Of a stretch of 64,000 nt of DNA, positions 312 to 46,420 are shown one piece after another. Each line of letters begins with the position of its first letter. Position 1 is the stretch's first letter. The stretch is from Octopus bimaculoides (Eukaryota). A program made the position numbers and the translations under genes. Location: positions 36,406,112 to 36,470,111 of the forward strand of contig NC_068998.1 of assembly GCF_001194135.2 (NCBI RefSeq), written 5' to 3'. A model generated the notes under the pieces. That model saw only the letters and a list, made by a program, of their open reading frames with translations, was not told where the DNA came from and searched no databases.

Positions 312-687
312 ATGACGGTTAAGACATTGTTGCAACTGTAATTATTCTGAAAAATTAATCTTCGCTAATTTGAAAGAGACGGCAATCATTACGGCAATCC
401 GGACGCCATTGTTGTGTGGTAGACTTTCTTAAATCAATGAACATGTCGGCGCAGATAAATTACTTCCATTCCCTTCTTGTTAATTACACTCCACTCTATC
501 TTATCGCTCTGTACGAATACCCACACTCATACACTCTCCCACTCACACTCATACACACACTCACGCACCGTTTCGCAGGTACACAAATACAGATATAAGT
601 GAAATAGCTGGGGTTTTCATTATTTAAAAACAGCGAGGAAATAAGTAAGGTAGAGTAAAAATTTATTTTATAAGTAATCTCACGTCT

Positions 688-760
688 GGCTGCATGGTTA
701 GAAGTTTGCTTCCAAAGCTCATGGTTTCGGGTTCGATCTCGCTGTCTGACATCTTGAGCT
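688..760 (+). mobile_element. Decayed 5' tRNA-like head of SINE family B
   Basis: ggctgcatggttagaagtttgcttcc...catggtttcgggttcgatc resembles the heads at 24638 and 35928. Confidence 0.5.
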
Positions 761-761
761 T

Positions 762-797
<36 letters not shown>

Positions 798-1344
798 CAG
801 CCTCGAAGCCGTCTTCCGGGCGGCATTGAAGCTAGCTCCTGCGGAGTGCGCCTTTGCGGCTTTCGGGATCCATGTTCCTTTATTTATTTTTTTTCATTTT
901 ATTCTCACTGTAGTAATTAATTCACTTCATATTTTTAGACTTGAACCTCCGTTCGTACTAAGCAAGTGAAATGTATAACCGTCATGCCTATCATCATTTT
1001 TCCATTACTTCGCCATTTCCCACCAAAATATTAAAATGAGATTGAGATAAAATGAATAGGATCCATTTCCTCTCAATCTCATTGTATCTTTTATGGCAAA
1101 TCTTCAGGAGGATATTGTAACCGGAAAAGGAAAATTAGTTTTCCACCTAGACATAAGTTTTATAAACTACAAAATATAAATATTCACACTAGCACACTTG
1201 AAACGTGCCTGTTACAAATCTTTATCTCGATTTGAATGTACGTGATGGTATTTAGAATGCCCAAACTTAACTCTGCAAATGTGCTAAACACTGATGCTGA
1301 TCATAGTTTAATCAATAAGCGTAGGAGTGAGGTAAATGCATTAG

Positions 1345-1660
1345 AAATAGGGGCTCAGTGGGGCCTCATTTAAGCGGCCCTTAAGAAATTGAATCTCCTT
1401 ACGATACTCCCTGAGAGTTCATGTTATGAAATTCATTGTCATTGCTCCGATTTGGTCACCAATACCATTTATTTAGTTTAAAATGCAGTAAAAATAAGGG
1501 GGTGGGTTAGTGGGGCCACAATTAAGGCCTTTGGATATTTCTCGGGATTGGGGGAGTTGCTGGTTTGAGTTTCGTTGTCCTTGTACCAACGGCCTAGGAG
1601 GAGTTAAAGAACATAAAAACGTAACGGACAGAGAAACATCACTCAAATTTATTTAAAGAT
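1345..1660 (+). mobile_element. Possible non-autonomous Helitron/Helentron-like (Lep1/DINE-1 style) element
   Basis: 3' end ggcctaggaggagtt...gtaacggacagagaaacatcactcaaatttatttaaagat followed by (AT)n resembles recalled Lep1/DINE-type 3' ends; 5' end undefined. Confidence 0.3.
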
Positions 1661-1744
1661 ATATATATGTGTGTGTGTATGTGCGTGTGTGTGTGTGTGT
1701 GTGTGTGTCTGCACGCGTGTGTATGTGTGCGTGTGTGTGCGTGT

Positions 1745-1990
1745 GTGTTACCACCTACCAATGCTTGACAACAATAGGGAGGTCAGTGGGACCTCACTTA
1801 GGAGGCCCTTTTTTGTTGATAGATTGTCTACTTAGCAGTTCAGCATAAAGACCGCGACAAAATAAGTACCAGACTGTAAAATGAAACACTAAGTACTGGT
1901 GTCGATTCGTTTGACTAGAATCCTTCAAGCAGTGCCCTAGCATGGCCGCAGCCCAATGACTGAAGCAAGTAAAAAATAAAATATAAATGA
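1745..1990 (+). mobile_element. SINE family B, 3' arm
   Basis: gcttgacaac...aataagtacc...ggtgtcgattcgtttgact...cagtgccctagcatggccgcagcccaatgactgaagcaagtaaaa; matches 24900-25077 and 32590-32800. Confidence 0.75.
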
Positions 1991-2164
1991 TAAATATCGA
2001 GCATGGTTATCAAATGTCACGAATCGTTGCTGTAACGCTTAGGAATCGCTGCATAGACAGATGCAAATTATTAGTAATAGGTGGCGGCGCACTAATCCAA
2101 AAGCTGGGTAGATTGACACATAACTCACCGGATTATAGATGAAATGAATATGTACCACGGAGTG

Positions 2165-2366
2165 AGGCAGCAAACCAGCAGAATCATTACCGCGCAGGGA
2201 AAGTGTCTAGAAACATTACGTTCTTAAGTTCAAATTCCGTCGAGGTCGACTTTGCTCTTCATCCTTTTGGGGTCGATAAAATAAGTACCAGTTGGATACT
2301 GGGGTCGTTGTAATCGACTTATCCCCTACCCCGAAATTGCTGGTCTTGCGCCAAAATTTGAAACCT
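2165..2366 (+). mobile_element. SINE family A (A1 tail), decayed
   Basis: Core agttcaaattccgtcgaggtcgactttgc..tcatccttttggggtcgataaaataagtaccag; tail gaaattgctggtcttgcgccaaaatttgaaacc. Confidence 0.8.
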
Positions 2367-3084
2367 ATATATATCAAGATGGCGGGAGGGAAGAAAAATC
2401 TGAATATCGATTCAGATTTAGATCAATAACTGCATGAGTAAATGTCAAAGTGTACGTCAAGAATATCTAATGTAGGTGTGGTGTATGCATTATCTGGAAA
2501 GTTCGAAACAGATAGGAAAACTGAAGCCTCTAAAATTCGAAATATTACACAAGGCAGCTTTTATTAGTAGCAGACACAATAATGATTTCAAATTTTCCTA
2601 TAAGGCCAACAATTTTAACGGAAAATCCCAGACAATTACACCGATCCCAGTGCTCAGCTGGGGCTTGTTATCGAACCCAAAAGAATGAAAAGCAAAGCTT
2701 TTTATCGGAAATGGGACTCAGAACGTATATACCCGGGAAAATACTGTTAAGTATTTTGTCCGGCACGCTAATTATTCTGCCAGTTATCCGTTTTAGTATT
2801 GGAGAAAATAATGTAATAAAAAAATATATATGATGTGCTACAGAGTTAATTTTGATTGGAATTCTATCGATATCATTGAAAATTTGTGTTTACGATATTA
2901 TGATGCAGAAAGGAGTTATGCGCATCAAAGAAAACCGGAAATTTTACAAAGAATTTTCTTAAAGATATAAAAGGTTGGATAAACTACAAGCTTTTGAGAA
3001 ACTAATCATATTAAATGTGAAATACAAATGTTCTTGTTTAGCAAAGAACATAACCAATCACAACGTAATACAATGACCTGAAAA

Positions 3085-3271
3085 TAACGGTTTTAAATTT
3101 AGGCAGTGTTAGAAATTGTTACATCGACTCCAGCACATGTTTTATATCGATTCTGGAAGGATGAAGTCAAGGTTGAACTCTGAGAATTTGAACTAACAAA
3201 GTAAAAATCAGGAACAAATGCCGTTAAGAAGTTTGTCCGACACGCTAACGATTCTGCTCGTTCACCGCCTA
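3085..3271 (-). mobile_element. SINE family A, old copy (first of a three-copy stack)
   Basis: Reverse complement of head aggcggtgaacgagcagaatcgttagc plus decayed core. Confidence 0.65.
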
Positions 3272-3288
3272 AGTAGCGGACAAAATAA

Positions 3289-3485
3289 TGCTTTTTTTGA
3301 TATAGTCGAAAGGCCTGAAATTTTGTGCGAGGGGTATTGTCGATTGCATCGACCCCAGTCGGAACTTATTTTATCGACAGTGAAAAAGACGGACGGTAAA
3401 GTGGTCCTCGGTGGAACTAGGACTCAGAACGCAAAGAGCCGGAAGAAATGCCATTAAGAATTTTTGTCCGACGTGCTAACGATTC
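3289..3485 (-). mobile_element. SINE family A (A1 tail), middle copy of stack
   Basis: RC core and aggcctgaaatttt tail; agtagcggacaaaataa occurs at 3272-3288 and 3693-3709. Confidence 0.7.
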
Positions 3486-3486
3486 T

Positions 3487-3692
3487 TATTTCTTTATTAC
3501 CCACAAGGGGCTAAACATAGAGGGAACAAACAAGGACAGACAAAGGGATTAAGTCGATTACATCGACCCCAGTGCGTAATTGGTACTTAATTTATCGACT
3601 TCGGCAAAATTTGAACTCAGAACGTAACGACAGACGAAATACCGCTAAGCATTTCGTCCGGCGTGCTAATGATTCTGCCAGCTCACCGTCTT
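3487..3692 (-). mobile_element. SINE family A (A2 tail), younger copy of stack
   Basis: Close to the RC of 8771-9003, with a short internal deletion. Confidence 0.9.
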
Positions 3693-4524
3693 AGTAGCGG
3701 ACAAAATAAAACCAACACATTCTACTAAAAATGACATTTCCTACATCAAAGAAACTGCCTCTCTCAAAACGACGGGCTAAGATGTGGCCACACATGAAAC
3801 CGACTTGCATACAAGAACTAAATGCTCCGCATGCAAAAATCATGACAGTATCCCCCAACCAGCTCTTGGCATCGTGGAGCCACTGACTGGCCCCTCACCC
3901 GATGACGCTCCGGATGCCGTAACTCAATGTAATCGAATCAAAAGACCTAAGATTCAAATGTTGTTGGGTGTCACATGATCACACGCTTCTCCCAGGCCTT
4001 GCCGAATATGACTCACTCCTCCATCACTTCAGGTGTACTAAATGCACCAACTTGAGCTGTACAGTACTGATCCCCATTGATCCCACAGAGTTTTTGTTGG
4101 CGTTGTCTCGTACATAGTGGACCACTCTGCAATCCCCGAGGACACTTGACCAAGGAGAATTTTCTTTTCTCTTTGTCACGAATGAAATATCTCTATCAGA
4201 AGCCTCTGGCACTTTCACGAAACTGAGCGCGAAGGATCGGTGGCGTTCATGAAGCTGGGATGCCGAGTAACTTTACATTTGGTTGTCCATTTATTGCTCA
4301 CTATTGTGTTCACAAATATCCACCACATCATGTATATACATATACATACATCATACATACATACGCCATTCAGTTGAAACTAACACTTCTCATATTATGT
4401 GTGCTTCATTTCATGAAAATCCAAGTGCAACAATGATCATATGCTGTTGTTCCATAAATATAACAAAGGAATACGGGTTTCTATTTTCTCACAACTTCAC
4501 CATTGTTACTTAAGCAGTTCTCAA

Positions 4525-5000
4525 ACAGCATGAAAATTATTGGCGGTGATACGAATGCGAAAATTGAGCTAAAAGATGCAAATCTTACATCAATTTACCA
4601 ATCAAAATTGCGAATATGTCCATGACTTTCAAAAGGAATGTAATTAATTTGAATTAACAATGCACAAAGAGAAAAGATTAGCTGTAGATGCTCTCATCCT
4701 CATCTAATACTATGGCACAACTGGATCCCAATCTAGTCAACTAAAAATGGGAAAATAGTGTTATGAATGCAAAGCTTCAACTACCTATTTTACTGTCAAT
4801 TCTCACAATCGAATTGTGATGGGAAAATTTAGGCTGCAATAGAGAGTAAATAAGAACTTAAGTAAAAATTGAATATGTTATGACTGGAAGAAGCTGCGAG
4901 AAATTCATAAGCAGCTGATGTCGAAAATCGATTCGAAGTATTACAGCTTTTAGTTGATGTCAAAATTACGAATTCCATTAACAATAACATCATAAATTCT
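4525..5000 (+). pseudogene. RTE-clade LINE, decayed APE endonuclease and linker
   Basis: Frameshifted translation KIIGGDTNAKI...AQLDPNLVN*KWENSVMN...VNSHNRIVMGKFRL...ENRFEVLQ matches APE motifs GD.NAK, QLD.IL, SDH. Confidence 0.75.
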
Positions 5001-5636
5001 AATGAAAATGCAGCAGAAGCAAATATTCCAAGCGTAGAAAAAAATAGTATGTCATGGGAATGTAAAATGATAAATTATGAAGAGAGAAGAACAGGTAGAA
5101 GTGCATAGTGCTACATCTAAAATAACTCAAAAGAGCTATGGAATGAACAGGGCCATCACTAAGCCCCTGCGGTAGCAGGGAGCCTCCGCGGTTCAGAGGC
5201 TCCATGTTAAGATCAAAATACATAGATGAGCTATCTATTTACTTTGGTTAAGATGTTAACTAAAAATTTCAAGCCAGAGGAGTAAAAAAATGCGTGAGTG
5301 TACTGTAAATAAATTTCAAAGAAACGAGAAAAGTAAATGAAAAATGCTTGTAAACGAATTCCTTAGGGAGATAAAAGGAAAACGAAAGAAATCGAAAACA
5401 ATGAAAATAAGAACAACTTCAACACAAAAGACAAGAAAACGAAGCAATGGTGATGAAAGGTGGGGGTTGTATACTTATACATACATACAGACATACACAC
5501 ACAGGCATACGTACACACATTTATACATACTTATAGATATATACGACTGGCTTTTATCTGTTTCGTTTACCAAGTTCATTCGCAAGGCTTTAGTCAGCTC
5601 AGAGAGAGAAAGTGAGAAAGAGAGAGAGAGAGAGAG

Positions 5637-5682
<46 letters not shown>

Positions 5683-6719
5683 NNNNNNNNNNNNNNNNNN
5701 NNNNNNNNNNNNNNNNNNNNNNNNNNNNNNNNNNNNNNNNNNNNNNNNNNNNNNNNNNNNNNNNNNNNNNNNNNNNNNNNNNNNNNNNNNNNNNNNNNNN
5801 NNNNNNNNNNNNNNNNNNNNNNNNNNNNNNNNNNNNNNNNNNNNNNNNNNNNNNNNNNNNNNNNNNNNNNNNNNNNNNNNNTATATATATATATATATAT
5901 GGCGTTGTTATTTGATGTTGAAAAGCTGGTCACTTTGTACACAGAATAGTGGCCTTTGACCACCTAAGGCAATAAAAACTGGAGACAAAATTCTTTCTGT
6001 ACCAAAAACAATGCGAACACGCGCACACACACAGACACGCACAGAAGTTTGTGTGTGTGTATGTATGTGTCTATCTATGTACATATATAGGGATACAGAT
6101 ATTGCGTTCTCACAGTCACCAAACCTCTCAGTTCTTCAGTTGTAACTAGTTTGTGATCGAGGCATTTCATTTCGCAAGGTACTATTTTTCCTTAAATTTG
6201 TGATTTCAGAGAACGGTAAGAAATTCTTCATATTTTGCATCTTTGGCATTTTGACTTTACAGTTTGAATTGTAGTATTGTCTCTCCAGTCGTAAATATTG
6301 CAACAGCTAACAGTGAGATATAGAATTTAAAAAAGTCATTTCCGACTGTAATCAAGTATTTGAGAACATTCACGTCTATCTTTCAAAAATATATAATTTG
6401 AAATAGTTTGCTTTTGTTTTGGACTGCAATTTTTTAGTATTTTAATATTCTTGAATAAACGTCTTTGCATACAAAAGCTGAGACAACTATACTTCACAGT
6501 TGCTATTTTGAAATGCTTGTCTTCTGATATTTGTGAGTTCATTGAATAAATATTTAACTCTATTAAATATTGACCTTCCTAAACATGAAATAATGCGATA
6601 ATTCCAGCGAAAATAAATTTAACTTGTTGTACTTTTAAAGATGTTCTTTAGGATAACGTGAAATATTGAACTTCAGATAGAATAAAGTAAAATGTAGCTA
6701 TGAATAAAAGGTGCGTAGA

Positions 6720-7750
6720 TTATGAATTTTGATTGAAGAGATGGAGCCTCGAAACAAAAAGTTGCCGGGGGCTTCTAAAATTACGAAAGAAATAAAGAAT
6801 TGTATCAATTTTTTTCAGATTCCAAGGCACCACACCTCAACACTATACTAATGGAAGTATGGAAAACAGGAGCACTCTTGAATCGGCTATTAAAATGTGT
6901 AATAGAACATTATAGCAAAACAATGCTATTATTTGGGTCAAAATGGTCCAGTACAAATCCCAAAGAGAGAAAATATTCGATAATCTAAACAAAACAGACA
7001 TTAATTTATCAGTTATTGCTGTTAAAATCCTAAACAAAATGTTGCTTGAAAATGCACCATTATTAACAATCGAACAAAATTGCTTTGCTTCAGAAGGATC
7101 AACATTATCGCATATTCTTGTAATACCAAGACTTAAGAGGGCGTTAAAGATAAGAACGTAAATGCTGTTATATCATTTATAGATCTTAGAGAGGCATTCG
7201 ACTTAACCCACCAAGCCAAATAGATATAGATTCTCTGAGAATATTGTATTCCAGGCAATATCGCAGCTGCAATCAACATCACATACAATAGTACAACCAT
7301 TCAGGTTTTATCACTTGATTGTGATACAGCTTTCTTTGAGAACATGACAGAAGTACTACAAGGTAACTCTCTAGCACTTATCCTATTTATTGTGGCTTCT
7401 TTGAAAAGCAGACGTCATTCTGGAACTGTTATTAATGACTCAGATGCAAAACCTATAACTCTCACTTCTAATATTATTAAGGAAGCTCACTTGCTACTTC
7501 AATGAGATGAGGAAGCAGGAAAGCACCTCGAATTACATTTCAATAACAAAAGGACAGAGTTTATGGTTCACAGTTAACCAACAAAACATGTGATGTCATC
7601 ATATGTAAAACCGAGATGTATAACTGACTTTAAAACCTTGGGTCATGGATAAAAAGCTTAAAGAGAGGAAGGAAGATGATAATTGAATTGATATGTTCAG
7701 CAATGAACAAGACGTCCGCAATATGGGTCTAAACTATTTAATGACTTCAA
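6720..7750 (+). pseudogene. RTE-clade LINE, decayed reverse transcriptase
   Basis: VKILNKMLLE...EQNCFASEGSTLSHIL...DCDTAFFENMTEVLQGNSLALILFIVA...DFKTLGHG match RT motifs (QNGFR.GRST, GVLQGD.LAP.LF, FKYLGS). Confidence 0.85.
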
Positions 7751-8770: not shown

Positions 8771-9003
8771 GGCGGCGAGCTGGCAGAACCGTTAGCACAC
8801 CGGACGAAATGCTTAGCGGTATTTTGTCTGCCCGCTACGTTCTGAGTTCAAATTCCGCCGAGGTCGACTTTGCCTTTCATCCTTTCGGGGTCGATTAAAT
8901 AAGTACCAGTTACGCACTGGGGTCGATATAATCGATTTAATCCGTTTGTCTGTCCTTGTTTGTTCCCTCTGTGTGTAGCCCCTTGTGGGTAGTAAAGAAA
9001 TAA
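8771..9003 (+). mobile_element. SINE family A, full-length young copy (A2 tail) inside (CA)n
   Basis: tRNA-like head ggcggcgagctggcagaaccgttagc, B-box-like gagttcaaattcc, central tttcatcctttcggggtcgattaaataagtaccag (Meta/MESC-like from memory), tail ccccttgtgggtagtaaagaaataa. Confidence 0.92.
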
Positions 9004-10879: not shown

Positions 10880-12230
10880 TCTAGGGGGAATAATTCTAAA
10901 TTTAAGAAATCATATTGTAGTTAAGTAATGAGTAATGTGTAAAGTTGTTATAAGTAGTTATGGGTATTCTTCTTCTGCTTATTAAGTCTATATTAGGGAT
11001 GTTCGCATAATCAGTATACTCACGTCTAGTTAATGCTCTATTGTAATATTCATTATATGATAGGTAGATAGCCTCGAATAAATGTTTCTAACTATATAAT
11101 TTTCTTTCTATTATAAGCACAAAGCTTGAAAATTGGGGTGAGGGAGCTAGTAGATTATACTGATCTCAGTACTCATGTGGTGCTTGTTTTATAGACCTCA
11201 TAAGGATGAAATGTATAGTAGACCTCGGTAGAATTTGAACTCAGAACTAAAAGCCATATGAAGTATTTTATCTGGCATGTTAATGATTTCATCCGGCATG
11301 CTAATAGCTTTAGAATAGTTACTAGACTTAACGACATAGCATTTCATCAAGATCTTTGTATATTCCACATACTGATGTCATGGGAGCTAACTCTTTGTGT
11401 CAGTATCGATAATTATAAATAAATAAATAAATAAATGAATAAATAAATGAAGCTACGTATTTCCTTTTTGAATCTATATGTGCTGCGTGACTTCGTGATA
11501 ACAAACTCTGTACAATTTACCGGAAGCAGGGAGGATGTTTAGAAGTATAGTATTTTAAATATGAAATCCAGCAATGTTACAAACTTCAGCAGAAGCTTTT
11601 GCTCCCATGCTCACATCGAAGGGCCCTGAATTTTACTTTTTGAAACATATGGAATTACCATAGAAAGTACATGGTTTTTCTTTCGTATAATATATCAATG
11701 TCACTATTTTCGATTGAAGTAATGTTCATTGTAAAGTTGAGGAAAGAACTGCTCTGAGAATCAGCTTCATTATCGTACAATAGCATTTCTTAGTATCAAA
11801 CTGCAAACAAGTGGAAACCATTTTCATCTTGGAAACAATTGAATCATTGGATATCAGAACTAGTTTTACTTCAAAGAGTTAACAGTTATTGGTGCTTAAT
11901 TTTAGGAGTAATTGAATGTAATATATCTTTGCTAATTATGTCTTTTCGTATATTTTCCTAACGTCATCAGGCCTATACTAGGTATCTACATAGATTTACA
12001 CATTTACACATCTACACATGACATTATAGATCAATTGGTAACTCTATATTTAGATTCTCTACATTTTTTTTCTTCCCGGATGTCAGATATTGATTTCAGC
12101 CACCTCTTGGCTATTTCTATTTTACTATTTTTGTCTTTAGTGGAATACTCTACACCGCTTCTTACTCATAATTCACTTCTCATATTGTTCCACATCTATT
12201 TATAAGGCGAACTTTAGTATTTTCTTTCTA
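10880..12230 (-). pseudogene. Penelope-like element, decayed RT, interrupted by a SINE
   Basis: Minus-strand remnants QFDTKKCYCTI, FDVSMGAKASAEVCNIAG, GKLYR, IIIDTDTKS, YYNRALTRREY match PLE RT motifs FD...YPSI, FDVTMGS.DGAE.CELVG, GLYRDD, YYN.AL...GY in the right order. Confidence 0.7.
11101..11290 (-). mobile_element. SINE family A, old copy inside the PLE
   Basis: gacctcggtagaatttgaactcagaac and tail ttctattataagcacaaagcttgaaaatt. Confidence 0.65.
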
Positions 12231-16520: not shown

Positions 16521-17461
16521 CGCCTCGAATTGCACTCGGCCTTGAGGATCAAACACGCTTCCCACATGCGTTGTTCCGACTTTGAAAATCACATCATTTC
16601 ACTTATTGGTCAGGTTTTATTACAACTGTTATTTTTAGGATAATTGAAAAAACTCTTTTATCGTTCATCAAGCAGAGAAATGCAACTTCTCTTATTTGAC
16701 CCTTTGAAAATAAATACTCTTGGCTAGGAATAAGTTTTTATTGATACAATGTACCACGATGTATATATTTTTACCAAATATTACCAAAGTAAAATCTATC
16801 AATTCTGCTTGTTTAGTAATCGCAGCTTAAATGTCGTTGTTAATAACTTTGTTTGTGTTGTATAACTTAATGTTTTCACATGTGAAAATTGCATAATTTT
16901 TTAACGTGACAGTGGTTGTTGTCATCTTCTTAATCAAGTCTATTTTCTTATTCGTTTTTGTATAATCTTTTTTTTAACGTCAAAGTTAAGTTATTTATTT
17001 TATTTTTAGATGATTACTGCTGCTCTAGAATGAGAAGTAATATTCAAAAAGAAGTGTCAACTTACAAAAAAGAAGTAATAATATGCCAATCGATGAAACA
17101 AAAAATAAATTTTGTTTCCTCTAGGTGTTGCGACAAACATCGTTGGGCTGGAGAATGTCCATGCTTGAAAATAGTCTGAAATAAGAAAAGTTTCCACTAA
17201 GTAAAGCTAGCAGAAATCAAATTCTATCGCAACATTCTGAAAAGATGTCCTTTCAACACAAGCCAAGAACAACAATGACGACGATGACGGAAACAGAAAC
17301 AAGACAAGCAATGACAACAACAACAACAATAATAATGTTGATCCTTTCTGCTACAGGCACAAGTTCTGAAATTTTTTGAGGAATGGATTAGTGGATTACA
17401 TCGACCATAGTACTCCACTGATACTTGATTGGATTCCAGTTTTATGAAAAAGGATGATAAT

Positions 17462-17521
<60 letters not shown>

Positions 17522-17522
17522 T

Positions 17523-17781
17523 GGCTGAAGTTCAAAAGATAGTGCTCATGGGAACTGCCCATATCCTACGTAAAATACTGTCTATGTGATCTCAAATTTT
17601 AAAGCAAACACATAATTTTCTTATGGGTTCTTAAGCATTCACTTGAACAAAACTGTACAAATCCAAATATATGGTACCCTCGGCATAACACCTACATGAA
17701 CTTCTAACTTGTTGTCTCTTGAGGTCTCTGGGTGAGACTTGGATCCAACTTGTACAAATGCAAAACAAAAGTCAAACATAA

Positions 17782-17782
<1 letters not shown>
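17523..17782 (+). mobile_element. R4/Dong-like LINE 3' end, 5'-truncated, inside (TAA)n
   Basis: Encodes AEVQKIVLMGTAHILRKILSM* (typical R4-clade C-terminus) plus 3' UTR; TAA arrays on both sides. Confidence 0.85.
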
Positions 17783-17823
<41 letters not shown>

Positions 17824-17838
17824 AATAATAATAACAAC

Positions 17839-17881
<43 letters not shown>

Positions 17882-17890
17882 TTAATAATA

Positions 17891-19335
17891 ATCCTTTCTG
17901 TATTATTGGCCACAAGGACCGAACACAAAAACATATAGGGACAATACAATCAAGGGACAAGTGGGGTTTAAAACAGAAAACGTGTAAACAACAAAAACAA
18001 AATAACAGTTAACAACAACAAAAAAGAAACAATAAAATTCCCCAATGGGGGAGTTACAATCCAAAGCAACCAGGCATCCCACACATCCTGGTCACCACGA
18101 CTGTCAAGGGCACGCCTCTTCTCCTCAACTGCACCAGCTTACAGACGAATATTCAGAGTAGGCCCATGCACGCGAGCCATTGTCGCAACATTCACTCACC
18201 TCTTAGCAAACTTACTGCGCGGCAGTGCTTCCCTCTCTACCCTCATTTTCCTTTTCAAGTGGAACTTGAAAAAGCCGATGAGGGATCGGCCGAAGAGGAA
18301 AGTATGTCTTCAGTCCTTCCGGTCTCCTCTACCACACTACCTCTTTCGCTATAGCAACCAGGCAGAGGAAAACGGCCTTTCCCTCCCAACCAAAAGAAGG
18401 TGATCCTCACAATGGACTCGGCTGATAACCGGATCCGTCCTACACGTGATAACAGCTGTTCGACAAAGCTCCACAGGTCGGTAATGCACGGACGCTGGAC
18501 GAGTGCATGCAGGACGGTTTCATCGCCATGTGCACACCTCAGACACGACCGCTTGACAGCATTTCCGTGTCTGTAGATCTTGTCTCAAACCGGCAAAGCT
18601 CCCCGGTAGCACTGTCAGGCCAGAAATTTCGGGAAGTTATACATAGGCCCTGGCCAGAAAGTCCTCCGGAAAAGCCCAGTTAGTTGATCCCTCTTGACGC
18701 CCAGAGTTTCTCCCAGTACGTCGTCGCTCTTTCCCTTCACTAGTCCTCTATAGAACTCTATGGTGGAATTTCAACCGACCGCGTTTCCCGAATGGCAGAA
18801 AGCTGTGAGTGCTTGCCGACATTCCAGGTGCCAAGCGCGCTTTCTCGGTCTGCGCTTGACCCAAGACTGTAGCTCTGTCGATGAGATGAGCTGCAGAATG
18901 TCCCGTTTGACGAACAACAACCACACCTGCTGGCCATTAAGGAAACGATGGAAATGTCACAGCCTCAGTGCATTCTGCGCATTATTAGCCACGGTATGTC
19001 CAGTCCTCCACTCAACAGCTGAACCGCCTGATGAGCACAACACGTCCCTTCCATAAAAAGAAGAAGAGCAAGCGCTCCAATTTTTTCACGCACGAAGTGG
19101 GGCAAGGAACGACAGTCAGGCGGTAGTAGATGACCTAAGCGAAGTATGCATTCGCCAACTCAGCTCTCTGCCCATTTCTGGGTGAGATTGGCTACCCTGC
19201 TCGTCACCTCTCCGCAATTCTTGTCCACCTGGAGGTCTGGACCAAATCAGACCCCCATCAATTTAACCGGTCATTCTGTCAAGCGTACTACAACGCTGTC
19301 GGTTGGCATGCACCTGCCTCTCCAGGTGAAAAACT
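17891..19335 (-). mobile_element. L1-Tx1-like LINE, 3' 1.4 kb (post-RT region, CCHC knuckle, 3' UTR)
   Basis: PVKLMGV*FGPDLQVDKN, LERLLFFFLWKGRV, and SCLRCAHGDETVLHALVQRPCITDLWSFVEQLL (C-x2-C-x8-H knuckle); T-rich 3' UTR ending agaaagga(tta)n. Confidence 0.85.
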
Positions 19336-19526
19336 GATAATGTCATTCTGTCAACGTGTGGACGCTGGTTGCTCTCGTTCATACTTTACGTTTAAATTTC
19401 TGTAATTTTGAATTTTTATCACTTCTTATTTTGAACTTGACAAAGACACACTTACTGTTGAAATATCGTTGAACTAATAAAATATCTTACAATCGAATCG
19501 CGCTCTTCGTCTTGACTAATAATAAT

Positions 19527-19568
<42 letters not shown>

Positions 19569-19587
19569 AATAATAATAATAATAATA

Positions 19588-19890
19588 GGGCTGATTACTA
19601 CCTAGCTCAGATACCAGGAAACCCCAAAATGGCTGAAGTTCAAAAGATAGTGCTCATGGGAACTGGCCATATCCTACGTAAAATACTGTCTATGTGATCT
19701 CAAATTTTAAAACAAACACATAATTTTCTTATGGCTGCTTAAACATTCTCTAGAACAACACTGTACAAATTCAAATATATGGTACACTAGGCATACCACC
19801 TACATGAACTTCTAACTTGTCGTCTCTTGAGGTCTCTGGGTGAGACTTGGATCCAACTTGTACAAATGCAAAACAAAAGTCAAACATAAA
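19588..19890 (+). mobile_element. R4/Dong-like LINE 3' end, second copy, inside (CAA/TAA)n
   Basis: RADYYLAQIPGNPKMAEVQKIVLMGTGHILRKILSM*; same 3' terminus (gtcaaacataaa) as 17523-17782 but a longer 5' extent. Confidence 0.87.
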
Positions 19891-20809
19891 ATAATAATAA
19901 TAATAATAATAACTGCTCCATTTGGAACAGCTACGATTTTGAGATTGGTGCTTGGATGTTGAGTGTCTTCTACGATAAGTTGACATCCAGGTACCAAATC
20001 TTATAATTTGCTGAAACAGGCCCTGTGAGACTTCTGACTTCACTCGCCTTATATCCTTATTTTTGAACTGAGGCAGGAATTCAGTCCGGATGCTGTTGGC
20101 TCCAGCGTATGAGATTTTTCTTGATTTTAGCTTTGTTTACGTAATTGTTGTTGTTGAGTTTCTTCATTATTCTTGTTGCTTTCGTTAGTGTTATTGTTAT
20201 TGCTGTCATTGTTTATGCTATTGTTGATCGTGATGCCTTTACTTTTTTTCAATCAACTTCTCGCTGACATTTTCAACATTTTTCGTGTTGGTCTTGTCGA
20301 TATTGACATTTTTATCTTTTACATCTTCTATAGAATAACTTTTCTTCCTGTGTTTGTTGTTATTGCCACTGCTGTTTGTCTTTTGTTTGTGCTGTTCTGG
20401 TAACTGGTGATCTCAAGGTTCTTCTAATTGCCGTTGATGATATCGTCGTTGTTGTTGCTGTTGTTGTTGTTGTTTATAGCCGTGCCTTTTTCTTATTGGT
20501 GTTGTCAGACTTATCACTTATAAATTTGTTTATTCTATAACTCCAGAAAGACTTCAAATAAAATAGCTTCATAGATTTAGAAAGCAACATTTTCAGTTCA
20601 GACGACAGCTTTGGTTTTTCGAGTAAAATGGAAAACATCAACGCTTTTCAGTCTTCAAACGTTCGGTTTATTGACATTTTAAATAAAATATTATTTGTCA
20701 GCTGGCCGCAGACGACTGGAAAATATAATTGTGCTTTCTCTAATATACAAGTTTATAAACACTATTTTCTCAGCAAGTGTTTTAAATTATGCTAACGGTG
20801 AAAATTTCA

Positions 20810-22113
20810 ACTTTCATGTGAAGAAGGCTAGAAGAACGCATCGTTTATTATACACAGACAAAGCAGTTCTAAATGAAGTAAAATCTAGAAAGAAAAATTT
20901 AACAATAGCATCGATAGGTTATAAGAAAGCCTATGATATGATTCCACACTCATGCATAAGTGAATGTTTGCGTTATATTCTGTGTTGCATACAACATAAG
21001 GGAATTAACTAGCTTTAGCATGAAGACATGGAAAGTAGATCTCTATTCAGGCGACACAGCGTTTGAGAAAGTTAATATCGACAGAAGGATTTTCCAAGGA
21101 AACCCTTTATCTCCTTTAATATTTGTCTTATGTTTACTCCCCTTCAGTTTAGTATTAAGGAAGGCAAAGGGAGAATGTCAGTTCAGAAATAGTAAGGGAA
21201 AAATTAGCCATTTGCTCTACATGGCTGATCTGAAGCTTTTTAATGAGTATGAAATAGAGAGATATTCCTTAATACAAACTAGTAGTTTTCAGCAAAGATA
21301 TAGGCATGGAATTTGGCATAGATAAGTGTGCAATATTAGTCATGAAAAAGGGACAAGTAGTCACTTCCAGTGAAGGCATCCAATTACCAGCTGGCCAGAC
21401 ATTAATAACACTGAAAGAAGGAGAGAGTTACAAGTATCTAGGGGTATTAGAATCTGAGAGAGTAATAACTAGAAATGAAATCAAAAATTGAGAAGGAGTA
21501 CATCAGAAGGCTGAGGAAGCTAATGAAGTCAAAGCTAGATGGTCCGAATCTTAGGAAGGCTGTAAATACTTACGCAGTGTCGTTACTTAGATACACAGCA
21601 GCTTTTGAAGATTGGACAAAATCTAAATGAGCAACTCTAGACAGGAGAACTAGGAAGGAATTCAATACGAATGGAGGACTTCACCCAAGAACAGGAGTAG
21701 CAAGATTATACTTACCTAGAAAGGAAGGTGGAAGAGGTTTAATATCAGTAGAAGATTGCGTGGAGTTAGAGAAGACCAAACATTGAGGACTAATTAGATA
21801 AATCCAAGATAGATAAAAACCAAGTAGATTCCCAATGAAGGTTATGTAACTCAAAAGAGGAAAGCGTTACTCATATAGTAAGTGAATGTAGCATGCTGGT
21901 ACTGGAAGAATAAAAGAAAAGACTTGACAACCTAAGGAGAGTAATCCTCTGGGAGTTATGTAGAAAGCTAGGATTTGACCAAACTGACTATACTGATAAT
22001 TGGTATGGACATGAACGTAGTAAAATACGAGAAAGCAAGAAATATAAGATGTGGGAATTTAACATTCATACGGACAGAGTAGTAGAAGCTAAAATACCTG
22101 ATTTAGTGGCAGT
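20810..22113 (+). pseudogene. R4-clade LINE internal fragment (RT, CCHC remnant, start of RLE)
   Basis: KNLTIASIGYKKAYDMIPHS, IFQGNPLSPLIFVL, ISHLLYMADLKLF, FGIDKCA, YKYLGVLE, RLYLPRKEGGRGLISVED, HIVSECSML, RVVEAKIPDL. Confidence 0.9.
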
Positions 22114-22377: not shown

Positions 22378-23183
22378 NNNNNNNNNNNNNNNNNNNNNNN
22401 NNNNNNNNNNNNNNNNNNNNNNNNNNNNNNNNNNNNNNNNNNNNNNNNNNNNNNNNNNNNNNNNNNNNNNNNNNNNNNNNNNNNNNNNNNNNNNNNNNNN
22501 NNNNNNNNNNNNNNNNNNNNNNNNNNNNNNNNNNNNNNNNNNNNNNNNNNNNNNNNNNNNNNNNNNNNNNNNNNNNNNNNNNNNNNNNNNNNNNNNNNNN
22601 NNNNNNNNNNNNNNNNNNNNNNNNNNNNNNNNNNNNNNNNNNNNNNNNNNNNNNNNNNNNNNNNNNNNNNNNNNNNNNNNNNNNNNNNNNNNNNNNNNNN
22701 NNNNNNNNNNNNNNNNNNNNNNNNNNNNNNNNNNNNNNNNNNNNNNNNNNNNNNNNNNNNNNNNNNNNNNNNNNNNNNNNNNNNNNNNNNNNNNNNNNNN
22801 NNNNNNNNNNNNNNNNNNNNNNNNNNNNNNNNNNNNNNNNNNNNNNNNNNNNNNNNNNNNNNNNNNNNNNNNNNNNNNNNNNNNNNNNNNNNNNNNNNNN
22901 NNNNNNNNNNNNNNNNNNNNNNNNNNNNNNNNNNNNNNNNNNNNNNNNNNNNNNNNNNNNNNNNNNNNNNNNNNNNNNNNNNNNNNNNNNNNNNNNNNNN
23001 NNNNNNNNNNNNNNNNNNNNNNNNNNNNNNNNNNNNNNNNNNNNNNNNNNNNNNNNNNNNNNNNNNNNNNNNNNNNNNNNNNNNNNNNNNNNNNNNNNNN
23101 NNNNNNNNNNNNNNNNNNNNNNNNNNNNNNNNNNNNNNNNNNNNNNNNNNNNNNNNNNNNNNNNNNNNNNNNNNNNNNNNNNN
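22378..23183. other. Assembly gap (N-run)
   Basis: N-run. Other gaps: 5683-5881, 12234-12371, 24748-24774, 32192-32416, 37095-37154, 38941-39220, 45126-45338, 49872-50723, 59172-59734, 60688-60945, 61895-62078. Confidence 1.
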
Positions 23184-23500
23184 TTCATCATTTCGGGGGT
23201 CGATTAAATAAGTACCAGTTACACACTGGGGTCGATGTAATCGACTCAATCCCTTTGTCTGTCCTTGTCTGTTCCCTCTATGTTTAGCCCCTTGTGGGCA
23301 ATAACGAAATAGGTATTTCATCTGCCGCTACTTTCTGAGTTCAAATTCCGCCGAGGTCGACTTTGCCTTTCATCATTTCGGGGGTCGATTAAATAAGTAC
23401 CAGTTACACACTGGGGTCGATGTAATCGACTCAATCCCTTTGTCTGTCCTTGTTTGTCCCCTCTATGTTTGGCCCCTTGTTGGCAATAAAGAAATAAAAA
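23184..23500 (+). mobile_element. Tandem head-to-tail SINE family A (A2 tail) units, period about 185 bp
   Basis: ttcatcatttcggggg starts at 23184 and 23369; junction gcaataacgaaata|ggtatttcatctgcc. Confidence 0.9.
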
Positions 23501-23514
23501 ATAATGATAATAAT

Positions 23515-23670
23515 AACGGTTTCAAATTTTGGTACAAGGCTCCATATTTAGAGGACGCGGCTTAGTCGATCATATCGATTCCAGTGTCCAACTGTTATCT
23601 TTTTATCGACTCCGAAATCATGAAAACAAAGTCGACCTCGGTGGAACTGGAAACAATACGTAAAGAGCAG
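23515..23670 (-). mobile_element. SINE family A (A1 tail), old copy
   Basis: ggtttcaaattttggtacaagg...aaagtcgacctcggtggaa. Confidence 0.7.
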
Positions 23671-24279
23671 TAACTACTGTATATTATTTAGTTAGAGCTC
23701 TTCGTTCATGGTTATAAAATCTACAAGCAAACTATAAAAATATCTCTTGATGACTGATGAATATTTAGACAGGATGAAACCTATTTAATAAACCTAATAA
23801 AACAGGTGATAAATTTAGCCAAGACATAAACACGAGTATTTGATGCAATAAATGTGCTAGAAGTACTATATTAAGAGGCAAATTAACTTTAATTGCGAAC
23901 ATAAAGCGAAACACAGACAGAGAAATCTGAGAATTAGAGCGGAACGAGCCAAAGAAATACTTAGGATCTGGTGCAGTTTATAAGATACAATACATAAATG
24001 AAAGTAAAAATTAAAAGAAAATACTATGAAGCTTCAGGCTAATACTGGCTTCAAATTTTGGCACAAGGCCAGCAATTTCGGGGGAAGAAAAAAGAAACGA
24101 TAGGAAAAATTATTAAAGGTATAAATATACTAGCCATCCAATTTATGAAATAAAATTTCAACATGATAATTGGATGAGAAATGAGCAGAAGAATTCTGAG
24201 AGAAAGAAAGAAAATCAATTAAAAGAAAGAACCTACTAACAACGTTCGGAAGTTTCCGCCTCGGAGCAAATATTCTATC

Positions 24280-27187: not shown

Positions 27188-28944
27188 CTCGCTGTCACTA
27201 ACTACTGCCTAATTATATATGCCTGCTTAACTTTTGCATCAACAAAGTATAAACTGTCAACTATGATATTGCAGATATGGTTTTGTAGTTAACTTTTATA
27301 TGTTAATATAAAACTATTATATATCTTCAGGTCCGTTTCCACAGAGCTGGGTCTTCCTGATCTTGTGAGTAAAATATTTGGTAACAAGTGCAGAATAACC
27401 TCGGTTCTATCTGTTTATGATTCGTATATTTAACCCATCTTGAGTGCCTTTTGAGTGTGTCTTCTACGTCATAGACATTCGTGCTAAATCTAAGTCCTTA
27501 GAATTAATTCCAGCCTTTGTATCACCAATATCGGATGTCTTGAAAAAGAAAATTGACGCTGCTCTTCGTTTTCTAACTTAGCCATGACAAAACGAGTCTA
27601 AAACTCTCTTTGTTAGTCTCTTGGCCCCTCTTACATTTTTCTCCCTCGCTCTTAACCCTCTCCATGTATGTATGTGTGTATGCATCCATGTCTTTCTGTT
27701 TGTCTGTCTGTTTGTATATATGTATGTTTATATAATTATCAGTCTTACATAGTTATATTTTTGTGGATTCATAGTAATTTGAAATATCTATTTACTCTAT
27801 CTGCCATGAGAAATGCACCATAAAAGTTTGATAAAAAAATGTACTGTTATTGCATCAGCTATGATATTAAGCTGTGACGCGCATTTAGTTTGTGTGTAAT
27901 CGCAGAAGAGTGAAGCCAAGAGACATACAATACGGCATGGACATCAGAAATTTCTTAATGAAATATGTCATGCACAGTTTGCTCAATGGAAACGTTGTGA
28001 CATGCCATAACTAAAACAACGACGACGACCACAAGAACAACAGCAACAACAATAAGAGAATAAAATAATAATCCTTCCTAGTATAGGTACAGGCTTGAAA
28101 TTTTGAGGAGGGTGAGGAGTTTGTCAATTACATCGTTTGCAGTACTTAACTGCATATTTTATTTATAGCACATATTTTATTGACTCCAAAAGACTGAAAG
28201 AAAAAGTTAATCTCGGCGGAATTTGATTTAGAACGGAGAAATGCATGAAAATTTTTGTCCGGCATGCTAACAATTCTACTAGATGGCCACCTAAATAATG
28301 ATAAACTTTGAGGAGAGAGGCAAATTAATTGAATCGAGTCCTTTGCGTGACTGGTACGTACTATATCCTTCCAGATAAATAAATATTTTACGACTTGCCT
28401 GCCTCGGTAGACTATATACTGCCCCATGCATCAGCATGAGCCTCTTGAAATCAATTTTAAGGTCATATCCCTCTGAGCGTGAGGAAAATGTAAATCAGCT
28501 TTCTCCTTCCTGCTCCTAGCCATATGACGAAACAGTCTCCTTCATGACGTATCTGAACTTATTTCTTTGATTGGAATTTGTCTATGTCTAGGAATTATTA
28601 TATACTGGATGCCAAAGTTGGAAAGATTTTTTTGTTGTAAACGCTTTTATCCGTATTAAAAAGCAAAACACAACCAAAAAAGAAATCTCATGTTTTTGTT
28701 GCAAAAGATTGTCTTTTTTTTCCAATATTTACGTCTAGCTTTCCTTCTTTTTTATGAGATTTCTGTGCCAATGCTTGTTTCATTGGCATGTATTACCAAC
28801 TATTTCACCCAGTGGACGTAAAATTAATCAAGAAATTGCTGACGTTACTGAATCAATTCGGACAAATTGACACAAAAACTTCGTAAAAAAAAAGAAAAAG
28901 AGTAGAGCGCTGTGAAAGGTATCTTTCCACAGTAAATAATAATG

Positions 28945-37215: not shown

Positions 37216-37535
37216 ATAATAATAATAATAATAATAATATTTTCTACTAAAGGGACAAGGCCTGAAATTTTCGGGGAAGGGACTAGTCGATGTTTCACTG
37301 TTACTTAATTTATCGACCTCAAAAGTATGAGAGGCAATAATAATAACCAACAAACCAATCAGAGAGGCTCTATGCGGTCAATCGAACTGCTGAAAATTGC
37401 AGCCAAATCTCAATCAAATTACACTATCTTTTTCTTTCTTAACATATAAACACTTGGGCTTTTTCACTGGAAGTATCTCCATTCACTGATACCTTTACTC
37501 TCATCAACCCGTTGCGAATGGTCTGAAACTGAACA

Positions 37536-37751
37536 TTATTTTCTACTCTAGGCACAAAGCTTGACATTTTGTGGGAGGTTGCCAGTCGATTAGATCGATT
37601 AGATCGACCCAGTACGCAACTGGTACTTAATTTATCGACGTCGAAAGGCAAAGTCGACCTGAGCGGAATTTTAACTCAGAACGTAAAGATAGACGAAATA
37701 TCGCTGAGCATTTCGCCCAATATGCTAACGTTTCTGCCAGCTCGCTGCCTT
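37536..37751 (-). mobile_element. SINE family A, near full length (A1 tail)
   Basis: RC head aaggcagcgagctggcagaaacgttagc; tail ttgtgcctagagtagaaaataa. Confidence 0.82.
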
Positions 37752-46167: not shown

Positions 46168-46420
46168 GGCGGCGAGCTGGCAGAACCATTAGGTCTCCTC
46201 AGCGAAGCCTATTTTAATGAGATGGGCAGACTAACAATGGTGAATGCACATAGAAACATTTCAACCGTATTTACGTTCTGAATTCAAATTCCGCCGTGGT
46301 CGACATTGCCTTTCATGCGTTCGGGGTCGGTAAAATAAGTTCCAGATGAGCACTGACGTCGACGTAATCGACCTACCCCGTCACCTAAATTTCTGGCCTT
46401 GTGCCAAAATTTGAAGCCAA
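46168..46420 (+). mobile_element. SINE family A (A1 tail) with an altered internal segment
   Basis: Head ggcggcgagctggcagaacc, core, tail aatttctggccttgtgccaaaatttgaagcc. Confidence 0.8.

Follow-up and report, generated by a model that had tools for sequence, protein, structure and literature searches.

The stretch of DNA analysed here (the window) is a 64-kb segment of the Octopus bimaculoides genome (contig NC_068998.1, positions 36,406,112 to 36,470,111 of the forward strand) that contains numerous N gaps and numerous copies of short interspersed elements (SINEs). Its minus strand carries a decayed and 5'-truncated long interspersed element (LINE), made up of a remnant of open reading frame 2 (ORF2), a 3' untranslated region (3'UTR) and an (ATT)38 tail. 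The subject of the analysis is the end of this LINE and its relation to the tails of one group of SINEs in the window, family A. The module in which the family-A SINEs terminate is homologous to the 3' end of an L1-superfamily LINE.

The LINE and its relatives

The ORF2 remnant lies at 18145-19344 (minus strand, like all other parts of the LINE) and, when read in six frames, is interrupted by frameshifts and stops. It corresponds to approximately amino acids 698-1141 of the ORF2 of a related LINE from Argonauta hians, including the zf-RVT CCHC region, for which the match of the window copy is weak. In a tblastn search of the window, residues 728-1141 of an intact relative align to 19327-18145 (E=2e-93), and faint homology reaches to about 19344. 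A claim that the LINE also adjoins (ATT)n on its 5' side was dropped, because the homology ends at about 19344 and the 170 bp from there up to 19516 are unassigned. Downstream of the ORF2 remnant comes the 3'UTR, most of which (17970-18144) can be aligned to the 3'UTRs of the Argonauta LINE and of a further contig, L002. The last 80 nt (17890-17969) form the 3'-terminal module, with an interrupted stem-loop and the terminal box AATAATACAGAAAGGATT. On the sense strand the LINE ends ...TGTGTTCGGTCCTTGTGGCCAATAATACAGAAAGGATT and then runs into a terminal (ATT)n repeat of ~38 units (17778-17889; 17778-17892 as delimited by TRF), which appears on the plus strand as (ATA)n/(TAA)n.

A protein homologue search with the stitched ORF2 fragment of the window gave a match to the Argonauta hians protein P0004; the nearest protein relatives of the window are from cephalopods. 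Locus L001 of this species (GCA_054771915.1) contains a near-full-length LINE of 5.8 kb with ORF1 and ORF2. ORF1 is open for 640 codons (~639 aa from the first Met) and has one CCHC knuckle; ORF2 is of ~1140 aa with two frameshifts, and is followed by the 3'UTR and a short (ATT)4. The 3'UTRs of the window and Argonauta LINEs align throughout, terminal module included, as far as the terminal repeat, and the tails of the two LINEs resemble each other with z=10.2 (local score compared with dinucleotide shuffles, here and below). A second LINE copy in L001, a 5'-truncated one of ~90 bp at 760-850, has the identical junction between UTR and module and continues into (ATT)22. The junction is the same in three LINE copies from two genera, namely the window copy and the full-length and truncated copies of Argonauta.

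The alternative that 17890-17969 is a 5'-truncated SINE fragment that landed beside the end of a LINE has some points in its favour, as fragments consisting of a tail only do exist in the window (24046-24084) and this part of the window shows a clustering of insertions at (ATT)n. However, neither a repeat nor a target duplication is present between UTR and module, and the junction recurs unchanged in the full-length and the second, truncated Argonauta copy. As the homology with the Argonauta 3'UTR runs through the tail, no stray piece of a SINE is involved here, and we regard this alternative as very improbable. The alignments instead identify 17890-17969 as the true 3' end of the window LINE, and the tail as an integral part of the LINE that is conserved across two octopod genera.

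The Argonauta ORF2 contains the Pfam domains Exo_endo_phos (PF03372, the APE endonuclease), RVT_1 (PF00078) and zf-RVT (PF13966). Among proteins of solved structure its best relative is human L1 ORF2p, with which it is collinear over residues 6-859 (E=4e-45); R2 reaches only 1e-19. Judged by these domains and by the better match to human L1 ORF2p than to R2, the LINE is a member of the L1 superfamily, the group comprising L1 and Tx1. Within that group, the ORF1 of Tx1 elements is of a gag-like CCHC type and not of the vertebrate L1 ORF1p (Transposase_22) type. The single CCHC knuckle of the Argonauta ORF1 gives a zf-CCHC match of E=0.017, below the cut-off; no match to Transposase_22 was obtained, nor any significant similarity to fish ORF1. 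In repeat surveys of octopus and other molluscs, the L1-type lineage is listed as L1-Tx1 or Tx1 (PMC13282606, PMC8967140, PMC10294476). On the basis of domain architecture, the literature and elimination, the LINE most likely belongs to the Tx1 clade; the hints of a target preference described below lend indirect support. The names of homologues gave no clade, only 'hypothetical protein' and similar being returned by homologue searches and a cluster look-up, and nothing was found in the literature on a ZCCHC3/Tx1 lead.

The other LINE relatives recovered are less informative about the tail. Contigs L002, L004, L005, L131, L132, L133 and P0002 either end before it or are unrelated. L005 (Logan SRR11869391) holds at 1330-1462 a decayed LINE that belongs to the subfamily of the window copy, and stops before the tail; a 19-nt unit of its 3'UTR (TATTGTCCCTTGTTTTATA) is tandemly expanded to at least six units just upstream of the expected site of the module. 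The module is absent from L126-L130, which have an ORF2 that is 39% identical and come from a source organism without the octopus SINE. Two of these, L126 and L128 (ENA ERZ21867824), represent a related, intact LINE family, a cluster of 732 members, that forms head-to-tail tandem arrays with a period of ~6388 bp. Arrays of this kind are typical of elements with a specific target. When metagenome contigs were scanned with a protein pattern, no further LINE copies came to light. A DNA scan for AGAAAGGATTATTATT produced 120 loci; those compared by BLAST contain neither SINE nor LINE, and they are therefore apparently chance 16-mers.

Family-A SINEs and their tails

The family-A SINEs have one body, which consists of a putative tRNA-type head with box-like strings and a CORE-like middle ending ..GGGGTCGATGTAATCGAC. 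The strings resembling RNA polymerase III boxes (TGGCAGAA.. and GAGTTCAAATTCC) were recognized in the head by eye; neither ARAGORN nor Rfam found a tRNA in the family-A copies. At least three alternative tails are attached to this body. Two of them, A1 (ending ..AAAATTTCAGGCCTTGTGCCTATAGTAGAAAGGATT(ATT)n) and A2 (ending ..TTGTTCCCTCTATGTTTAGCCCCTTGTGGGTAATAAAGAAAT), had been described in the original prediction and are upheld here, and a third type, A3 (ending ..AAATTTCTGGCCTTGTGCCAAAATTTGAAACC), is new in the present analysis.

The A2 tail is present at 3488-3551 (minus strand; SINE copy ~3486-3700) and three times on the plus strand: at 8938-9001, in a full-length family-A SINE (8773-9003); at 23247-23310, in a copy (23184-23311) that has lost its 5' part to an N gap; and at 23432-23495 (copy 23312-23500). 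All five A1 tails are on the minus strand. The one at 17341-17381 belongs to a 5'-truncated copy (17341-17456) that ends CAGAAAGGAT and is flanked by ATT repeats on either side, and that at 28070-28111 to a copy (~28070-28290) followed by (ATT)n. A third, at 37238-37276, terminates another 5'-truncated copy, which is flanked by (ATT)3 on the 5' side and by (ATT)8 on the 3' side; the remaining two are at 37536-37575 (copy 37588-37749) and 11101-11139 (copy 11153-11247). The A3 tail is found on the plus strand at 46382-46419, where a family-A copy (46168-46419) ends ..AAATTTCTGGCCTTGTGCCAAAATTTGAAGCC, and at 2328-2367 (copy 2217-2321). On the minus strand, it ends a family-A copy at 23517-23554, followed by (TTA)n, and occurs as a 5'-truncated fragment of ~40 nt, tail only, at 24046-24084.

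The clearest evidence linking LINE and SINE ends is the alignment of the Argonauta LINE tail with the A2 consensus of the window, which scores 52 over 53 columns (z=12.8, 0 of 5000 shuffles as good). When the whole 5.8-kb Argonauta LINE is compared with the 64-kb window by BLAST, the matches are the LINE copy, microsatellites, three of the four A2 tails and nothing else. The A2 matches use only the last 43-48 nt of the LINE, with identities of 86%, 84% and 79% and E values from 1e-6 to 6e-4; the best of them pairs the last 43 nt with 3486-3527 (86%, E=1e-6). With the BLAST comparison reversed, the end of the LINE in L001 is recovered at E=2e-4. Inside the window, the LINE tail aligns with the A2 tail at 3488-3551 with z=3.8 under harsh gap costs (24/5000 shuffles as good), and with z=4.7 (9/5000) and z=6.6 (0/5000) under two schemes of milder gap costs, chosen to allow colinear blocks. 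The alignment of the A1 tail at 17341 with the window LINE begins at the hairpin box and extends through the terminal CAGAAAGGAT (z=5.1-5.4, 2-3/5000), and in the more decayed A1 copy at 28070 the terminal block alone matches (z=3.1-3.5).

The strings quoted in the original prediction were all found in place. It had proposed that the family-A tail stems from the 3'UTR of an L1-Tx1-like LINE, that the LINE and A2 tails share colinear blocks and that A1 has the extreme LINE end and the (TAA)n junction, as read on the plus strand, in common with it. The comparisons above bear out these likenesses, which exceed those of shuffled controls for A2 and A1 alike, and place the homology in a LINE end that is integral in two octopod genera. 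The same end is found on other copies of the LINE, so that 17890-17969 is not a separate SINE remnant that they lack.

Short AT-rich sequences of low complexity may resemble each other by chance, and a BLAST search of the window with the window LINE tail does find the A2 tails only at E ~2-7. Set against this are dinucleotide-shuffle z values of up to 12.8, a BLAST E value of 1e-6 for the Argonauta LINE and the motif CCTTGTGGSYAATA, which occurs five times where 0.06 occurrences are expected. Chance as the source of the likeness has a negligible probability.

The extreme ends of the tails fall into parallel variants. The terminal box AGAAAGGATT followed by (ATT)n is common to A1 and the window LINE, and AGAAAT(A) is common to A2 and the Argonauta LINE. 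Judged by sequence, such parallel variants in SINEs and LINEs fit tails that co-evolve or are swapped. The further proposal that tails were swapped between Tx1 subfamilies is plausible and is documented in part: both terminal variants do occur on LINE copies, but a LINE with the full A1 or A3 tail was not recovered.

The Argonauta locus L001 also contains SINEs, of CORE type and, in three tandem copies, of a simple type with a tRNA-like head, and all of them end ..TGTGTTCGGCCCTTGTGGCTAATAGAGAAATC. This ending matches the tail of the window LINE, and thus several unrelated SINE bodies in two genera carry the LINE end. The tail of the window LINE and that of the Argonauta tRNA-like SINE align with z=12.0. 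The three simple SINEs, each of ~150 bp and LINE-tailed, occupy 903-1362, directly upstream of the full-length LINE; compared with the Rfam tRNA model, the simple SINE scores 21.8 bits, below threshold.

Homology alone has no direction, and the transfer could have been the reverse, with a LINE lineage acquiring the module, by template switching for example, from a SINE or some other RNA. The head-to-tail arrangement of the retroposons favours read-through or template-switch chimeras, and a partnership between SINE and LINE could still hold. However, in all three LINE copies, from two genera, the module stands behind LINE-specific UTR at one and the same junction. The 3'UTR of L003, a more distant LINE with 52% protein identity, is homologous as well (z=6.3) and has kept the CTTGTGGCCAAT box. 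Unrelated SINE bodies, both CORE-type and simple tRNA-type, also have the module, as would be expected if a LINE had been their common donor, and this counts against reverse transfer. A source of the module outside the LINE is, on balance, unlikely. When the terminal box of L003 is compared alone with the A2 tail, the likeness is not significant (z=1.5), and for this reason the box is not counted as evidence for the link with the SINE.

The hairpin of the shared module

The module of the window LINE contains an inner hairpin, GGUC-CUUGU-GGCC, at 17908-17920 (minus strand), a 4-bp stem closed by a pentaloop at 17912-17916, which is indicated by the sequence, by covariation counts and by folds. 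A CTTGT loop is present in the tails of the LINEs, of A1, A2 and A3 and of the Argonauta SINEs, and is invariant in the 18 tails that were aligned. The arms of the stem (5'/3') read GGUC/GGCC in the window LINE, GACC/GGUC in the truncated Argonauta LINE, GGCC/GGCU in the Argonauta SINEs, GCCC/GGGU in A2 and UGGC/GCCA in A3. In an ungapped alignment of the 18 tails, the four inner pairs are paired in 81.9% of cells compared with 63.4% in shuffles (0/500 as high), and sliding the 3' partner lowers the value to 14-47%. Three of the four pairs show changes on both sides, with a covariation score of 0.52 versus 0.19. The inner stem covaries between families. An outer, A/U-rich helix extends the structure to a total of ~11 pairs, 79.8% paired as against 38-55% when slid, and is weaker than the inner helix. 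Minimum free energy folds of single sequences regain the hairpin architecture in most copies.

A covariance model of 40 positions of the module (R1) was used to scan the window and L001 without filters. In the window it has 16 sites at E<=1, 15 of which have E<0.01, and all the tails listed above are recovered. The sites comprise one LINE end, 13 family-A 3' ends and two short, 5'-truncated fragments of tail only. The LINE end is matched at 17894-17932 with 33.6 bits, the A2 tail at 3488-3551 with 51.6 bits and the A1 tail at 28070-28111 weakly, with 18.2 bits. Three SINE matches are outside the training set, at 2328-2367 (A3, 26.5 bits), 11101-11139 (A1, 24.7 bits) and 37536-37575 (A1, 30.4 bits), and each is directly behind a SINE body found independently. 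The module is confined to retroposon 3' ends.

A probable LINE/SINE pair and its (ATT)n setting

An octopod LINE of the L1 superfamily shares its 3' module with the family-A SINEs and, given these comparisons, very probably copies them in trans, the two forming a stringent pair. The LINE ends in a module of 45-60 nt, with an interrupted stem-loop of ~11 bp, an inner 4-bp helix and a CUUGU pentaloop, followed by a short A-rich terminal box (AAUAAAGAAAU or AAUAAUACAGAAAGGAUU) and often by (AUU)n. The abundant family A, in at least three variants, and other SINE families in Argonauta bear this module at their 3' ends. The ORF2 protein would recognize hairpin and terminal box on the RNA, nick the target and prime reverse transcription at the RNA 3' end, probably slipping on the AUU repeat, and SINE RNAs bearing the module would be copied by it in trans. 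Stringent recognition by ORF2p is proposed by analogy with experimentally studied stringent LINEs (PMC3747384; PMC4176376). The comparisons demonstrate homology of the sequences, conservation of the module in LINE copies from two genera, its confinement to retroposon 3' ends and covariation in the inner stem; recognition by the protein, trans-mobilization, transfer from LINE to SINE and the Tx1 subclade we infer. A broader proposal is that an animal Tx1-like LINE, with stringent recognition of CUUGU hairpin, box and (AUU)n, a preference for insertion into (ATT)n and interchangeable tails, drives the expansion of SINEs in octopods to about a tenth of the genome. This can be put forward tentatively, as slightly more doubtful than likely.

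Several observations weigh against the existence of such a pair. The window's own LINE copy matches A2 only moderately (z=3.8-6.6), module-bearing LINE 3' ends recovered number only three (one in the window and two at a single Argonauta locus), and none of them has a complete tail of type A1 or A3. The hairpin is short and weak, with a consensus energy of -0.24 to -1.07 kcal/mol; z-scores for the folds of single sequences are not significant, and the RNAalifold prediction comprises just three inner pairs out of four and does not extend the helix outward. In addition, the structure was picked by eye from the very sequences that were scored, many of which are related copies.

The sharing of a tail by a SINE and a LINE is a known relationship; an L1-superfamily partner is unusual in an animal. 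The pairs UnaL2/UnaSINE1 of eel and ZfL2 of zebrafish, from the L2 clade, are stringent pairs established by experiment (PMC3747384; PMC4176376), whereas the octopus pair is known from sequence. Both have a tail of some tens of nucleotides common to SINE and LINE, and in both a small stem-loop with a conserved loop and a covarying stem is followed by short terminal repeats. They differ in clade, L2 as opposed to the L1 superfamily, and in the details of the end, UnaL2 having (UGUAA)n and the octopus elements a CUUGU loop and (AUU)n.

Pairs from the L1 clade are those of maize and sorghum SINEs with a monocot L1 lineage and of SINEX-3_CR with L1-1_CR in Chlamydomonas (Ohshima 2012, PMC3472496; PMC3747384). 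L1 tails account for three of 58 catalogued SINE/LINE pairs; those described are from plants or a green alga, none being reported there from an animal (PMC3472496, PMC3747384). Like the octopus pair, they share a 3' stem-loop of an L1-superfamily LINE with SINEs, with compensatory changes in the stem and conserved bases in the loop. They come from green plants, however, and end in poly(A), whereas the octopus pair is from a mollusc and ends in (ATT)n. An animal SINE has been attributed to a Tx1-clade LINE in crocodilians, SINEU with Tx1-Mar (Kojima 2015, PMC4494074), the single animal link between Tx1 and a SINE that came up in the literature searched. There the link is not the 3' tail but target preference and 5' heads derived from small nuclear RNA, of U1/U2 origin as compared with the putative tRNA-type head of family A.

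Octopus SINEs have themselves been described. Among them are the CORE-SINEs OR1 and OR2 (Ohshima and Okada 1994, as cited in PMC4758252 and PMC4824008), and the SINEs of octopus are mainly of the tRNA-Core and tRNA-Deu types (PMC8967140). OR1, OR2 and the tRNA-Core SINEs resemble family A in being abundant in octopus and in having a tRNA-type head and a CORE-like middle; compared by description only, family A probably belongs to the same superfamily. In the full texts that were searched no LINE partner is named for octopus SINEs, and entries in Repbase or Dfam may already record the likeness. In a 2026 annotation of O. vulgaris, 893 of 900 recently active SINE families are unclassified (PMC13282606). 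For such classification, the module offers a simple annotation handle in octopods.

If the broader proposal above holds, the pair would be the first animal counterpart of the stringent L1 pairs of plants and algae, and it would support stringent recognition as ancestral for the L1 group. The probable pair also adds an animal case to the very few L1-superfamily LINEs that have a sequence-specific 3' end, and bears on whether mammalian L1 acquired its relaxed, poly(A)-based recognition secondarily. Some 8-12% of an octopus genome consists of SINEs, whose expansion is a hallmark of the lineage. With a partner and a module named, the driver of this burst becomes testable, as subfamilies can be matched and dated and hairpin mutants assayed.

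The surroundings of the elements add a further aspect. The copies with (ATT)n behind them are the window LINE, the two LINE copies of Argonauta, the five A1 copies and, of the four A3 copies, a single one; the four A2 copies all end ..AGAAAT(A), with no ATT repeat. ATT repeats are present on both flanks of the three A1 copies examined out of five (17341-17456, 28070-28290 and 37238-37335) and of both copies of another element, X. None of the four A2 copies (3488, 8938, 23247 and 23432) has ATT flanks, and the one at 8773-9003 lies within a tract of (CA)n. Target choice may therefore vary with the type of tail.

Element X is of ~300 bp, with copies on the minus strand at 17522-17777 (X1) and 19587-19889 (X2) and a fixed 5' end, TTTATGTTTGACTTTTG... 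The copies are ~92% alike, with (ATT)n on both sides of each; the last 40 nt of X2 are missing from X1, and the CTTGT hairpin is absent from the element. A second reverse-transcriptase fragment is present in the window at 20683-22100 (plus strand, RVT_1 E=9e-11); it is not L1-like, its sole match in the PDB is a weak one to R2 and its 3' end enters an N gap at 22378.

That X borders (ATT)n without having the hairpin could indicate that the real mobilizer is a LINE of another clade, for example the (ATT)n/(TAA)n-associated Dong-R4, and that the end of the L1-like LINE is convergent or borrowed. Dong-R4 is abundant in octopus and is the most active LINE class reported for O. vulgaris (PMC13282606). 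But the L1-like match, with a length of 43-60 nt, is end-anchored and includes the covarying hairpin, and the fragment at 20683-22100, the sole other reverse transcriptase in the window, is not L1-like and has its 3' end in the gap. Judged by the LINE ends compared here, a mobilizer from another clade is quite improbable, and the L1-superfamily LINE is retained as the likely partner.

Elements ending in or targeting simple repeats are known from other animals. The Tx1 elements Kibi and Koshi are specific for the microsatellites (TC)n and (TTC)n, respectively (Kojima and Fujiwara 2004, as cited in PMC4494074), and the I factor ends in (TAA)n (PMC3747384). The octopus elements are similar in their repeat ends, with the A1 copies, X and the 3' end of the LINE set in or before (ATT)n and arranged in same-orientation chains. 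They differ from Kibi and Koshi in that target specificity is only suggested, by few copies, and that the A2 copies are without (ATT)n flanks.

One chain, at 17341-19889 on the minus strand, has the order X2, (ATT)7(GTT)13(ATT)4, LINE, (ATT)38, X1, (ATT)21, A1, (ATT)3(GTT)5, all elements being in the same orientation. In L001, a chain of the same kind extends over 540-7200 (plus strand) and consists of a CORE-SINE, (ATT)3(GTT)2, a LINE fragment, (ATT)22, the three tRNA-like SINEs, the full LINE and (ATT)4. By analogy with the microsatellite-specific Tx1 elements, these head-to-tail chains suggest insertion into (ATT)n tails or targets. At each of the nine loci of the window with at least four ATT units, it is the minus strand that reads ATT and never the plus strand. 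This strand bias of (ATT)n-tailed insertions over 64 kb possibly reflects an orientation bias inside a transcription unit.

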